Shown here piece after piece: positions 16,992 through 48,093 of a DNA stretch of 64,000 nucleotides (positions are counted from its first letter, which is position 1; every line of letters begins with the position of its first letter). The position numbers and the translations under genes were made by a program. The stretch lies in sequence record NC_071015.1. One strand, given 5' to 3'. Under the pieces are notes generated by a model that did no database searches, was not told the DNA's origin, and was given only the letters and a program-made list of their open reading frames with translations.

Positions 16992-18096
16992 TATCGTCGT
17001 TTTGTTGCAGAGTCGACTCCATAAAGTTGAACAAACTATCCTTGAGATTGGTACGGGTCAAGGCCACACCTTTATACATCTCCGGCGTGTACAGGGTGTC
17101 ATCAATCTCAATGTTGTCTTCTTTGGCGTTATCTAAATCGAAGAAATAGTTCGGGAACTGTTCCTTGTATTCATTAATTAACGAATCGGTGACTGAACTT
17201 AACCCACCCACCAAACGAATGTGTGTATTCTTCGGCGGATTCTTTTTAAGGTAGTTGTTCAGTTCAGTTCGGACCTGCTTGCTGTCCATTTCTCTATTGA
17301 TAAGAATTTTGTCATAAATCAGCGCATTCTTATTTTCCCAAAACTCGGCTTTAAACTCATCCTTGTTAAACCAGAAGCGATACGCTCCTTTCGGGTGCAT
17401 CTCGCCAAACGCGGTTCGGTCAAAAGACCCACCACAGATAATTTTATCTTTGTTTGAAGGCTTGTGAATATGTCCACTGAAAATGGCGTGCTTGGCTAAC
17501 GCATTCCATTTCACGGAATCATACAAACTGCCTTTCTTGTTTGCAATCGGAGGAAGCTGGTAATCAAATCCCCCGTGCAAGAAAATGAAATCCACCTGGG
17601 TTAGATTCCATTCAGCCAGCAACTTTAACGCTTGATCATAAATGATTTCAGTCGACGTATGACCAAAGTTGTCAGGCACATACATGACATGAATGTCAAG
17701 ATCAGGAATGTGTTCGATGCTGAGGGTATTGATGTACTTGATATACTGAGACTCTTTCGGTTTCAATATGTCAAACATCTCAGGCTGTCCCCAGTCATGG
17801 GAAGACGTCCCTTCCAGAACACGAACATGCACTTTTTTATCATGACAGATTTGCAGATGCTTTTTAATCCACCGTTGACAGATTAAAATGTTCGGATCAT
17901 TGGCCTGTGCTAAGTCATGAAAGAAATCCCCACCGTAGACACTGAAGTCAATCTCGTCAAGATTGTTTTCCTTATAATAGAAGGTATCCATATTCCCCAG
18001 GATATGACGAGTCGGTGTATGTGGGTGCAGTGTGTGATGGTCGGTTGAAAATAAAGCATTAAACAATTTATCGGTTTTCATTCTGTTCCTCTGCAC
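16939..18096 (-). CDS. Mre11/SbcD-like metallophosphoesterase nuclease
   Basis: D-x-H (TDHH), GDFFHD, GTSSHD, LHGGF and SGHIH calcineurin-like motifs. Confidence 0.88.
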   Translation of the reverse strand: MQRNRMKTDKLFNALFSTDHHTLHPHTPTRHILGNMDTFYYKENNLDEIDFSVYGGDFFHDLAQANDPNILICQRWIKKHLQICHDKKVHVRVLEGTSSHDWGQPEMFDILKPKESQYIKYINTLSIEHIPDLDIHVMYVPDNFGHTSTEIIYDQALKLLAEWNLTQVDFIFLHGGFDYQLPPIANKKGSLYDSVKWNALAKHAIFSGHIHKPSNKDKIICGGSFDRTAFGEMHPKGAYRFWFNKDEFKAEFWENKNALIYDKILINREMDSKQVRTELNNYLKKNPPKNTHIRLVGGLSSVTDSLINEYKEQFPNYFFDLDNAKEDNIEIDDTLYTPEMYKGVALTRTNLKDSLFNFMESTLQQNDDIDRALLDEILSEAMGHE

Positions 18097-45385: not shown

Positions 45386-45505
45386 CTAACTCCCGGGTTT
45401 CTTCTTTCGGTCAGTCTTACACTTCGACCAACGATAATTAATAAACAGCGCTAATGAGATCCCAAACAAAAATAACATCAAGATCCAGATAACTTCTTCC
45501 CACAT
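45386..45505 (-). CDS. Small membrane protein (39 aa), absent from the ORF track
   Basis: Manual translation MWEEVIWILMLFLFGISLALFINYRWSKCKTDRKKKPGS*; exactly fills the gap between two genes. Confidence 0.65.
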   Translation of the reverse strand: MWEEVIWILMLFLFGISLALFINYRWSKCKTDRKKKPGS

Positions 45506-45506
45506 A

Positions 45507-46112
45507 TTAAACCCCGAAGACATCCTCCATGGTCACAATTTCGTCATTTGCAGAGACGTAATGTAACTGACCATTGCGGAATTCACCATTAAACGTTGTG
45601 TATTTATCTTCGTTTCCTTTTCGGACCAGGATCTCAAAACGACTATCATACGTTTTGCTATGCTTGTGGTGGGCGGTAACTTTGTAACCCAAACAATAAT
45701 CAATGTCCGGATTAATGTTATCGGCAAAGCTTTGAATGGTGGATTTCATTTCATGCAATGCACGCATACTGATCCAACTTTCAATAAAACGACCCACTAC
45801 GTCGAAACGATTGTTAACATCCCCTGTTAAAGAATAGCGAAAGTCATGGGGACGGATTGCAGGGGAGAGAAAATCGCTGATCCCTTCTTTGGGACGAGTA
45901 AAGACAATTTCACCGGTCTGGGGACTTTCCATTCCGAATGTTAAGTAACGTTCCCTTCGATTGATGATGAACTCGAACGCTACGATAAATTTATTTTGTA
46001 ACTCATTGTTCCGTAATTTGTACGGATTAACAACGCGTGTGTTTACGGCCTGTACTGAGAAGTGCTGGCTGAGTTTGTTGGACAGTTCCAGGCGGATAAG
46101 TTCGGTATTCAT
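45507..46112 (-). CDS. Hypothetical early protein
   Basis: 201 aa, RBS GAGG; promoter motif at 46155-46162. Confidence 0.65.
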   Translation of the reverse strand: MNTELIRLELSNKLSQHFSVQAVNTRVVNPYKLRNNELQNKFIVAFEFIINRRERYLTFGMESPQTGEIVFTRPKEGISDFLSPAIRPHDFRYSLTGDVNNRFDVVGRFIESWISMRALHEMKSTIQSFADNINPDIDYCLGYKVTAHHKHSKTYDSRFEILVRKGNEDKYTTFNGEFRNGQLHYVSANDEIVTMEDVFGV

Positions 46113-46283
46113 ATAAACCTCTATGTAGAAAACTAAAGTGTAGTTACATACTAATAATATCTGCCCATTATTTTTTAATGGAAAGTATTTATATTATGTA
46201 AGGAAAATCACTCAGCGCCACTGCTTGATTTTTCTGACTCATGATAAGTAATCATCTTTTCAGCTTGAATAATTATCAGGCAC

Positions 46284-46804
46284 AGAGATATTATGCAAAA
46301 CTAATATCTCTTTTTCTTTATGGGCATTTACGAGTACCCATAAAGAAGATCGAATGCCATCGTCTCTTCTAAATATCCAAATAGTAACCTCTAGATTTAA
46401 TTAAAGTGGGGATCCGCCATCTCCCCCTTTCTTTATAGGCATTTGCTCTGTTGAGTGTCTATAGAGAAAGAGCCGTCAACTCTTTCATCGGTCCTTCTGC
46501 TATTAACTGGCTGTCACCCAGTTATGTGCCTCCTGCTATAATTAAAGTGAGAGGATGTCCCCTTCCATCATCCTCTTGCTTTCTTTATGGGTTTTCTTAC
46601 GAGAATCTATAAAGAAAGCCTCCTGTGTTATAGGGACTTCGGTCCCTTATTTCTGTATGTTTGTTTATCGAAGCGAACATACAGAAGTACTTAGCCGTAG
46701 TTCAACTTAAATTTTATTTAGTTTGAATGATTTGTTCGCCCATTTTTGGGCGGGGGTTTATTTACCCCCTCTTTCTATGTCTATTCACGAGTACACATAG
46801 AAAG
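46284..46804. repeat. Array of five double-hairpin units
   Basis: Related long hairpins TTTCT(TT)ATR...YAT(AA)AGAA at 46314, 46427, 46578, 46651 and 46771, each directly preceded by a shorter RGRGA..TCYCY-type hairpin. Confidence 0.7.
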
Positions 46805-46915
46805 CGAAACCAGCTGGTATCGCCCGCTTCATGGTTGCACCTATGAAGTTTCTTTTTTGGCCCTGAGATTCAACGCCATGGTCAAAGGGCTATTTTTATT
46901 TGAAAAGGAATTACC

Positions 46916-47173
46916 ATGGAAACCACTGAAGTGCGGACATTGTCCTTTTCTGAAGTGCTCAACGGACTTAAAGCTGGTCGTAAGTATCAGCGTCGCGGTT
47001 GGGCTGGAAAGGGTTTATACGTTCAGCTGCATGGATCATTACCCGCCGTCTCTTTAGAGGGCGAAACCAAGTACATCGATAAGTTCTTCGTGATTGTTAA
47101 TGGAGAGCGGGTGAACACTTGGGTTCCTTCTGTAAGCGATTTGCTGGCAGAAGACTGGATCGAAGTTCTTTAA
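46916..47173 (+). CDS. tad2: Tad2/DUF2829-family protein, putative sponge for immune signalling nucleotides
   Basis: LSFSEVLNGLKAG-x4-RRGWAGKG...WVPSVSDLLAEDW matches the DUF2829 family motifs; RBS AGGA. Confidence 0.82.
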   Translation: METTEVRTLSFSEVLNGLKAGRKYQRRGWAGKGLYVQLHGSLPAVSLEGETKYIDKFFVIVNGERVNTWVPSVSDLLAEDWIEVL

Positions 47174-47481
47174 GAAAAAGAGCCACACCAGGGAAATGCG
47201 CTAAAAGTAAAAAATAAATGCAGAATTTATTATCTGCAACGAACAAGTATGGCAGACCGTGTTTGCAATACTCTTTTCCCGACCGGGGGGATGCGCTTGA
47301 TGCGAAGCCGGTGTTCTCTTGGGACATTACCTGTTCCAGTCAGCCTAAAGAGAATTATATCGACAGGACCACAATCTGGTTGATCAATCAGTAACGAAGT
47401 TTCTTGTCAAGATTAGACGAACATCCTTTTAACACAGCCTTGTTGAAAGCACACCAATGTTCCCTGATTGAGATTAAATAG

Positions 47482-47688
47482 ATGAAACTTTATTTACTGA
47501 AAATAACCGAGTCAGTCGGTTACGATGAGTACGACGCTGTCGTCGTCTCGGCGTCCTCTGAGAGTGATGCCAAACAAGTAGCTGCAGGGCATTTATTGTT
47601 CGACTACTATGACGTGGAGATCGAATTGATTTCCGAAACATCCCTGGTTGAACGCGGGTTAGTCCTGTCATCGTTCAACGCAGGTTAA
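47482..47688 (+). CDS. Small phage hypothetical protein
   Basis: GYDEYDAVVV-x-A-x-SE-x2-A...VLSSFNAG resembles a recurrent phage family. Confidence 0.65.
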   Translation: MKLYLLKITESVGYDEYDAVVVSASSESDAKQVAAGHLLFDYYDVEIELISETSLVERGLVLSSFNAG

Positions 47689-47882
47689 AAGAAACCCCGC
47701 TGTCCTTCCCAACGTAATAGATATTGATCGGGTGTTACATTGACCAAGGTGTCAGGTAAGCCGAAACGACTGATTGAATTGCAAGTAAGAATTAGACTGA
47801 CTTGAATGTTAAGCGGGGATTCGATTACCTTCCCTTATAAAAGTTTTATTAAGATAGAGCTTTAATAAGGGACGAGAATTTA

Positions 47883-47958
47883 GCTTCTGTAGTTCAGTCG
47901 GTAGAACGGCGGACTGTTAATCCGTATGTCACAGGTTCGAGTCCTGTCAGAAGCGCCA
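47883..47958 (+). tRNA. tRNA-Asn (GTT)
   Basis: Acceptor GCTTCTG/CAGAAGC, anticodon loop CT-GTT-AA, TTCGA T-loop, encoded CCA. Confidence 0.97.
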
Positions 47959-48005: not shown

Positions 48006-48093
48006 GGAGAGTTGGGTGAGTGGCTGAAACCACACCCCTGCTAAGGGTGCATACCTTCGGGTATCAAGAGTTCGAATCTCTTACTCTCCGCCA
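48006..48093 (+). tRNA. tRNA-Ser (GCT)
   Basis: Acceptor GGAGAGT/ACTCTCC, CT-GCT-AA loop, long variable arm with TTCG, encoded CCA. Confidence 0.96.

Follow-up and report, generated by a model that had tools for sequence, protein, structure and literature searches.

A conserved array of double-hairpin modules in jumbo phage Kc263 and its relatives as a probable structured RNA gene

The locus and its hairpin modules

The stretch of DNA described here, a window of 64,000 nt, belongs to the genome of the Kosakonia cowanii phage Kc263 (MZ348422, 253,740 bp, genus Branisovskavirus), and its positions are converted into those of the record by adding 124,000. Within it there is an unannotated gap of 803 nt (46113-46915), which is flanked on the left by a gene for a 201-aa protein that is read leftwards and on the right by a gene for an 85-aa Tad2-like protein that is read rightwards. 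Two tRNA genes (47883-47958 and 48006-48093, found with ARAGORN and with the Rfam tRNA model) lie about 1 kb downstream of the gap. The gap is occupied by an array of paired hairpins that, with high probability, is the gene of a structured non-coding RNA. Folded as a whole, its 803 nt reach -267 kcal/mol, with z = -10.8 relative to dinucleotide-preserving shuffles.

The unit of the array is a module formed by a GC-rich short hairpin abutting a long A/U-rich one, and Kc263 has five of them (Table 1). A first-pass annotation, made from the sequence alone, had described ten hairpins (five short and five long), with each short hairpin followed within a few nucleotides by a related long one. Repeat and fold analysis recovered all ten in place, and in every module the long hairpin begins 0-2 nt after the short one. 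The leader AATTAAAGTG, which had been seen to be common to units 2 and 3, is also real and corresponds to the 5′ side of an extended short stem. The full RNA unit is nevertheless bigger than the stretch that had been delimited at first (46284-46804), as it extends from approximately 46198 to 46903 and takes in further hairpins: one at the 5′ end, those of the spacers, one at the 3′ end and two that resemble terminators.

The modules are unevenly spaced (115, 152, 70 and 120 nt) and their copies are only 75-92% alike. Thus, in agreement with the first-pass annotation, the array is not a CRISPR array: near-identical, regular direct repeats of 23-50 nt, as expected of a CRISPR array or of a Racr, are missing, and the would-be spacers are conserved between phages. 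A ToxI-like array was also rejected, as there are no head-to-tail copies (units of about 36 nt would be expected) and no ToxN-type family among the neighbours in Pfam and PHROG. The earlier view that the gap is non-coding is upheld as well. Peptide similarities between relatives are short (12-56 residues), one and the same stretch shows them in several frames and on either strand, and hidden small proteins were discarded as a candidate. Likewise, a tRNA-like element was discarded, since ARAGORN and Rfam find the tRNAs of the window only at the two positions given above. In the case of an antisense RNA, the conserved single-stranded motifs recur in the Kc263 genome only at chance level.

Table 1. 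Position of the array, its modules and the neighbouring features. Coordinates are those of the window unless a related locus is named; CM, covariance model of the long hairpin.
Feature	Position	Strand	Basis or remark
201-aa gene, annotated hypothetical, function not assigned	45507-46112	-	clade-specific; reads away from array
Leftward promoter-like box, AGATATTATTAGTATGTAA on - strand	46141-46162	-	TATG with G at 46145; GATAATATCT box in 16/16 relatives, invariant in close ones
Small hairpin between the divergent boxes, holds ATGGAA	46165-46181	+	six pairs, invariant in close relatives
Rightward promoter-like box TTATATTATGTAA	46186-46201	+	conserved in 16/16 relatives; TATG at 46195-46198
5′ hairpin of the RNA, 13 bp	46201-46235	+	compensatory changes among close relatives
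Module 1: short 46284-46311 (10 bp, perfect), long 46312-46349	46284-46349	+	CM match 47.5 bits
GCCAUCGU motif after module 1	46356-46363	+	its GCC pairs with GGC upstream of module 1
Module 2: AAAGUG leader, short 46408-46426, long 46427-46470	46399-46470	+	CM match 42.6 bits
Spacer hairpin between modules 2 and 3	46499-46529	+	compensatory changes in relatives
Module 3: AAAGUG leader, short 46549-46577 (C/U-rich loop), long 46578-46619	46540-46619	+	CM match 48.2 bits
Module 4: short 46632-46647 with C(UUCG)G, long 46648-46689 with 5′ arm UAUGUUUGUUU	46632-46689	+	CM match 42.3 bits
Module 5: small hairpin 46738-46751, short 46752-46769, long 46771-46804	46738-46807	+	CM match 42.5 bits
Conserved 3′ hairpin (GCG..CCAGCUGG..CGC)	46804-46823	+	repeat-family and fold analysis, relatives
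Terminator-like hairpin 1 and U-tract	46826-46858	+	fold and terminator scoring
Terminator-like hairpin 2 and U-tract, predicted RNA 3′ end	46858-46903	+	just before ribosome-binding site of Tad2-like gene
Tad2-like (DUF2829) gene	46916-47173	+	Pfam PF11195, E = 9e-19; neighbour, not constant array partner
Additional weak long-hairpin copy, 12 nt upstream of tRNA-Asn	47831-47871	+	CM match 22.4 bits, E = 0.015
Second promoter-box copy (TGTATGTAAC), Chaoshanvirus Aeromonas phages	L015:1465-1504, L016:1467-1506, L018:1021-1060		about 10 nt before tRNA-Leu

Conservation and distribution of the array

About 20 related loci were compared. These come from the phages N1M2, Yubaba, OBP, AH04, Survivor, pEt-SU, SXP01, AerS_266, ZPAH34, AhC3_1, CF8 and PS1, from three IMG/VR contigs and from five Logan/ENA contigs; five Aeromonas phages are included in the whole set. 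Every relative examined has a gap of 0.6-1.0 kb upstream of the homologue of the 201-aa gene, and this gap shows the same architecture, with four to six modules in the same order. The modules are positional orthologues, and the spacers between them are conserved among phages too. For instance, the fourth module has a tetraloop-capped short hairpin and the long 5′ arm UAUGUUUGUUU in Kc263, N1M2, Yubaba, SXP01, OBP and the loci L009 and L010. Similarly, the GCCAUCGU motif is present in Kc263, N1M2, Yubaba, OBP, AH04, SXP01 and L009, and it is invariant in the alignment of close relatives.

In five whole genomes (244-285 kb), strong matches to a covariance model (CM) of the long hairpin are found only in the syntenic gap: five in Kc263, five in N1M2, six in OBP, four in AH04 and five in AerS_266. 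Outlying copies are located downstream of the Tad2-like gene in OBP (17071-17111 of the record, 33.9 bits, a weaker match) and in SXP01 (L008:120-160, 37.6 bits). The same model finds no match at E <= 0.1 in phiKZ, EL, Goslar, Ea35-70 or SPN3US. As strong matches are confined to one locus per genome, the hairpins are not a dispersed terminator, promoter or mobile repeat. When IMG/VR was scanned with the palindromic base motif, 79 loci were obtained, all of which, with the exception of OBP, were unrelated single palindromes; protein-based scans of IMG/VR yielded five loci, two of them being OBP and pEt-SU.

The array has been found in phages of Pseudomonas, Aeromonas, Shewanella and Enterobacterales, and it is specific to one clade, that of the OBP, N1M2, Kc263 and Aeromonas nucleus-forming jumbo phages. 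Its persistence across the phages of all these hosts, despite an identity of only 25-41% in the neighbouring protein, suggests that its function is important. By contrast, the proposed tie to the Tad2-like gene is not conserved, since in Aeromonas relatives the array precedes tRNA genes and there is no Tad2-like gene; in the Chaoshanvirus phages, none lies between the array and the tRNA genes.

Close relatives of Kc263 are widespread. A public run of unspecified kind contains a 5.3-kb contig that is approximately 97% identical to Kc263 (45400-47800) at a depth of about 195, and near-identical words occur in several plant, food, silage and groundwater metagenomes.

A hairpin family maintained by compensatory change

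Sixty copies of the long hairpin were aligned for the consensus and for RNAalifold, and 57 CM matches were used for the pairing statistics. The consensus of the 60 copies is YCUUUCUUWAW-nnn-Y-AUUY-(loop)-R-AGU-R-nnn-WUWAAGAAAGR, which corresponds to an A/U-rich stem of 15-19 bp. Its sequence is conserved at the base (CUUUCUUUAU / AUAAAGAAAG) and again at the apex, where AUU and AGU form A-U, U·G and U-A pairs (U·G in 41/56 copies, U-A in 55/56), and the pairs in between covary freely. The sequence of base and apex is held across paralogues and also across phages whose neighbouring proteins are 25-41% identical. In the first-pass annotation, four of the long hairpins had been given xxCG loops. 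This is correct for three of them (UACG, AUCG and CACG) but not for unit 3, which has a UUAC loop, and these loops are a partial view of the conserved R-AGU-R motif on the 3′ side of the apex. The TATG reported in four of the five long stems is present in Kc263. Its interpretation as a promoter core is not supported, and TATG in the long stems is incidental, because only 16/57 family members carry it.

That the stems diverge and still pair had been taken for compensatory change, and covariation analysis over the approximately 20 related loci bears this out. RNAalifold finds 17 pairs in the 60 copies, with compensatory changes in 14 of the 17. Among the 57 CM matches, which were aligned by fitting them to the model and whose cells are not independent events, standard pairs occupy 93.6% of cells, versus 72.1% in column shuffles (none of 500 reached the observed value) and 45-57% in slid-partner controls; double-sided changes affect 15 of the 17 pairs, and 207 cells hold double changes versus 48 expected. 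Close relatives, with 68-86% identity in the 201-aa protein, add compensations between orthologues. For instance, GGGAC/GUCCC becomes GGUCC/GGACC in the short hairpin of module 4, CUGUAUG/CAUACAG becomes CCCUAUG/CAUAGGG in its long hairpin, and AGGAUG/CAUCCU becomes AGGGUG/CACCCU in module 3.

A short hairpin abuts the long one upstream in 37 of the 57 matches, versus downstream in 18, and the 40 nt upstream of the long hairpin fold better than the 40 nt downstream or than shuffles (p ~1e-6). At the scale of the whole array, RNAalifold pairs the A-rich 5′ end with the 3′ U-tract, one of the pairs being covarying, which tentatively suggests a helix that closes the molecule.

Strand preference and probable RNA character

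In 16/16 phages, the + strand, which runs towards the Tad2-like and tRNA genes, folds more stably than its complement, with a mean difference of 35 kcal/mol. The helices of the modules contain 173 G·U pairs versus 9 A·C mismatches in these 16 phages, and around 240 pairs are dropped in the fold of the opposite strand. These asymmetries point to the + strand as the functional one and to RNA as the better reading, and the RNA options that had been proposed fit them in general. The apical U·G wobble, in particular, is selected and not just tolerated.

Further signs of RNA are found in module 4, whose short stem flips among relatives. Its cap is C(UUCG)G in Kc263, Survivor and the loci L105-L107, C(UACG)G in L104 and C(GAAA)G in N1M2 and Yubaba. 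The exchange of UUCG, UACG and GAAA is a classic swap between extra-stable RNA tetraloops. The 97% relative from the public run, in turn, differs from Kc263 in loops, or by an A>G change that gives U·G (46343), or by a G>A change that turns U·G into U-A (46675).

These same observations bear on whether the element acts as DNA. A DNA-level element, with + strand single-stranded hairpins or cruciforms that would serve replication initiation, priming or packaging, is the least likely explanation of all and is very improbable. In its favor, each genome has the array at one place only, a divergent A/T-rich gap where the cumulative GC skew reaches a local minimum, and hairpins of single-stranded DNA tolerate G·T pairs. 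Nevertheless, the skew minimum follows gene orientation and is not a genome-wide extreme; with no initiator family found nearby with Pfam, a replication origin was rejected as a candidate. In addition, cruciforms need both strands, and the - strand mispairs A·C where the + strand has G·U, so the cruciform array that had been suggested at first is disfavoured; hairpins in single-stranded + strand DNA keep a small probability. Loop exchange between the UNCG and GNRA types and selection for the U·G wobble are typical of RNA, the array is bracketed by promoter and terminator signals, and the terminase gene is 7 kb off.

Promoter and terminator signals

Conservation within the gap peaks over its left 90 nt, which contain GATAATATCT, a small ATGGAA hairpin and TTATATTATGTAA. 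A motif search pairs the leftward box with the rightward one, and beyond these boxes the exact motif hardly occurs in the 64-kb window. The late-promoter core of the phiKZ non-virion RNA polymerase (nvRNAP) is TATG, and transcription starts at its G (PMC4666361). By analogy, the RNA of Kc263 would start at G 46198, with the 5′ hairpin directly after it, and the leftward TATG is placed 33 nt upstream of the point where translation of the 201-aa protein starts. The array and this gene thus appear to share a compact bidirectional promoter whose predicted start sites are 53 nt apart. A further promoter-like motif, ATATTATG, is held by the 5′ arm and loop of the short hairpin of module 1 and is kept in N1M2, Yubaba, SXP01, OBP and Survivor; transcription could also start here, or the RNA could carry a copy of the promoter.

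At the other end, one or more hairpins with a U-tract close the array before the ribosome-binding site of the Tad2-like gene in Kc263, N1M2, Yubaba, OBP, L009, L010, L012, Survivor and pEt-SU. In the Chaoshanvirus phages, the array also closes with a hairpin and a U-tract, which are followed by a second copy of the promoter box near tRNA-Leu. This arrangement supports both the assignment of the promoter and the view of the array as a unit of its own, and TGTATGTAAC is a candidate consensus for the tRNA and non-coding RNA promoters of this clade. The loci L105, L106 and L107 (68% identity in the 201-aa protein) have a different 3′ end. Approximately 110 nt are gone, which correspond to the 3′ hairpin and both terminators (46805-46903 of the window), and module 5 directly joins the ribosome-binding site of the Tad2-like gene.

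The array might instead be a cis-acting leader, in which tandem terminators or attenuators, or double hairpins like those of put, would set transcription into the Tad2-like and tRNA genes. The short hairpin followed by CUUUCUUU does look like a terminator on the + strand only, with 10 sites versus 3.1 expected; in Kc263, terminator-like sites on this strand include the short hairpins at 46408, 46632, 46735, 46752 and 46826. Also, an A-tract (AAAG) precedes the short stems, and L105-L107 have no terminator between the array and the Tad2-like gene. The put RNAs of HK022 are likewise two adjacent stem-loops with almost no linker, located downstream of a promoter. However, the array differs from put in having five modules instead of one, no sequence likeness and another polymerase, and in some relatives it is a closed unit with its own terminator. 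Termination would take place before the 3′ arm of the long hairpin is made, which leaves the conserved apex and the strong covariation unexplained. The restriction to one locus per genome is also at odds with the dispersed terminator motifs of phiKZ-like phages (201phi2-1), the Chaoshanvirus array has its own terminator and the tRNAs there have their own copy of the promoter, and the gene downstream varies with the lineage. A leader of this kind is consequently considered improbable. As for a generic phage terminator, a GC hairpin with a U-tract is found, but strong model matches are confined to one gap in five genomes.

Relation to known RNAs

No family of Rfam 15 matches the array even at E = 10 (the best score was 19.9 bits, to a miRNA model with a gathering threshold of 81, and all E values were >= 0.2), and in a scan of the whole window only the two tRNAs reach the gathering threshold. 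Literature searches found no description of this RNA, and the gap is not mentioned in the Kc263 genome paper. What is new is the hairpin family and its double-hairpin modular build, while the general kind is known, that is, a large phage structured RNA or a multivalent hairpin RNA.

Among large phage RNAs, ROOL and GOLLD are the closest in kind. They are large (0.6-0.8 kb and more), heavily structured and phage-encoded, they are often near tRNA islands, and their function is not known (PMC12286853). The Kc263-type RNA is likewise large, structured, phage-borne and adjacent to tRNA genes. On the other hand, a cmscan search with Rfam gives no match, the build is one of repeated modules, and the RNA is restricted to gammaproteobacterial jumbo phages. 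The parallel raises the alternative of an RNA-only machine, which would fold or multimerise without a dedicated protein, the hairpins making RNA-RNA contacts. Its size of 0.6-1.0 kb, its phage origin and its tRNA-adjacent position, which parallel ROOL and GOLLD (PMC12286853), would fit this alternative, and so would the conserved order of domains, the UNCG and GNRA tetraloops and, in several relatives, a 3′ hairpin with a palindromic CCAGCUGG loop-stem. However, that palindromic loop is not universal, neither ROOL nor GOLLD nor any other family is matched in Rfam at E = 10, no pseudoknots or long-range tertiary pairs were found, and the predicted structure is a string of simple hairpins instead of an ornate multi-junction fold. 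An RNA that works without protein is, on balance, unlikely, to about the same degree as the cis-acting leader.

Other known systems share single features with the array. CsrB and RsmZ carry many copies of one short hairpin motif per RNA, a likeness that suggests multivalent capture of a protein. In contrast to them, the array has loops without GGA, a conserved number and order of modules and much longer hairpins, and it is phage-encoded. A sponge of the CsrB/RsmZ type was indeed among the rejected candidates, as the loops of Kc263 have no GGA and this triplet occurs only in the 5′ arms of short stems. ToxI and CRISPR/Racr are also tandem RNA units in phage genomes, and such arrays can be decoys; here, nevertheless, the units are non-identical, the spacing is irregular, the spacers are conserved, and there is no ToxN or Cas gene nearby. 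Finally, the pRNA of phi29 is a 174-nt monomer that multimerises, five or six copies of a single hairpin domain being required for function. The array resembles it as a structured phage RNA with about that number of copies, but these are covalently linked and number four to six, and nothing ties the locus to packaging.

A possible docking platform for proteins

In the explanation that is preferred here, a single-copy gene would produce a structured non-coding RNA of approximately 0.6-0.7 kb from the + strand. The phage non-virion RNA polymerase would transcribe it from a TATG-type promoter, back to back with the promoter of the 201-aa gene, and in Kc263 the RNA would end at the two hairpin and U-tract terminators just before the Tad2-like gene. 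Each repeated long hairpin would be a sequence- and shape-specific docking site for one protein, so that the RNA would act in trans as a scaffold or sponge for several copies of it. The partner could be phage-encoded, or it could be a conserved gammaproteobacterial RNA-binding protein or RNase. The short GC hairpins, for their part, would serve as folding insulators that prevent the near-identical arms of neighboring modules from mispairing during co-transcriptional folding. A multivalent RNA had also been suggested in the first-pass annotation, and it ranks first among the readings weighed here. While the existence of the RNA gene is considered very probable, the docking mechanism is put forward tentatively, its chances being judged a little lower than even.

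Several observations weigh against this explanation. Many of the covarying sequences are related, and the covariation counts are thus not independent events. Each short hairpin, together with the U-rich 5′ arm that follows it, resembles an intrinsic terminator, and in the metagenomic loci L105-L107, which have lost the terminators, the array runs into the Tad2-like gene as a leader. Searches of public runs for RNA evidence met the locus only in DNA-like contigs: the 5.3-kb contig covers the genes and the gap at a like depth, which resembles genomic DNA, and two other public runs, also of unspecified kind, contain only short, low-depth fragments of the locus. The 201-aa protein, apparently co-regulated with the RNA, has a pI close to neutrality (6-7.8), and no RNA-binding fold is recognisable in it. 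Finally, the conserved module order and the module-specific features speak less for a loose, CsrB-like sponge than for a defined architecture, which suggests a defined particle.

A different fate of the same transcript would be that of a precursor, from which RNase III, E or P of the host or a phage nuclease would release small RNAs that have a single long hairpin each and act separately, in the manner of tRNA clusters, ToxI arrays or CRISPR pre-RNAs. Repeated hairpin units with variable spacers between them are compatible with this, the array heads tRNA genes that are themselves processed, and outlying single copies are found near tRNAs. Moreover, stacked short and long hairpins would form a quasi-continuous helix of 23-30 bp, and RNase III needs a helix of about this length. 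Against a precursor, the spacers and the order of the modules are conserved as in one folded molecule, the possible closing helix between the 5′ end and the 3′ U-tract has one covarying pair, and no dedicated nuclease gene can be recognised nearby with Pfam or PHROG. Processing of this kind is hence unlikely, although slightly less so than the cis-acting leader or the RNA-only machine.

If the docking platform is taken further, the RNA might represent a new class of large phage RNAs, required in trans when nucleus-forming phages infect, with five docking hairpins on a single chain organised in a defined ribonucleoprotein. This broader proposal is speculative and is more probably wrong than right. 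In one version, the RNA would sequester a host protein in several copies, either an RNA-binding defence factor or an RNase. In another, it would organise a phage protein, possibly the 201-aa neighbor, for the traffic of tRNA or mRNA from the phage nucleus.

Nucleus-forming jumbo phages transcribe inside a protein shell and must handle RNA without host factors, and, to our knowledge, their non-coding RNAs are almost entirely uncharacterised. Should the RNA titrate a host protein, it would amount to a takeover or counter-defence device made of RNA; should it work alone, it would join the short list of large phage RNAs without an assigned function. RNA databases also gain a family from the array, and the 0.8-kb gap that passes for "empty" in about 20 genomes can be re-annotated. 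The repeated hairpin is also an experimental handle, in the form of a 40-nt bait and a point mutant of the AUU/AGU apex.

Neighbouring sequences

Homologues of the 201-aa protein are found only in OBP-like and Aeromonas jumbo phages, with 25-41% identity, and their genes are always beside the array. The gene and the array share their distribution and, apparently, their promoter region. The protein has no match in Pfam or PHROG, and neither Foldseek searches against PDB and BFVD, which gave nothing informative, nor the protein atlas, which gave nothing, help to classify it. In its AF2 model (pLDDT 92), residues 115-190 are weakly similar to NTF2-like or cystatin-like folds (VIA-align, Z ~6, which is within noise). 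It was set aside as the binding partner because it has no family match, no recognisable RNA-binding fold and a neutral pI, and it is regarded just as an apparently co-regulated neighbor.

On the other side of the array, the spacer of 300 nt between the Tad2-like gene and a 68-aa open reading frame (47174-47481) shows conservation at the nucleotide level with the IMG/VR loci L009, L010 and L012. The shared core, GACAGGACCACAAT.TGGTTGATCAATCA, runs into a conserved start, ATGAAACTTTAT, and this spacer may be another structured RNA or a leader.

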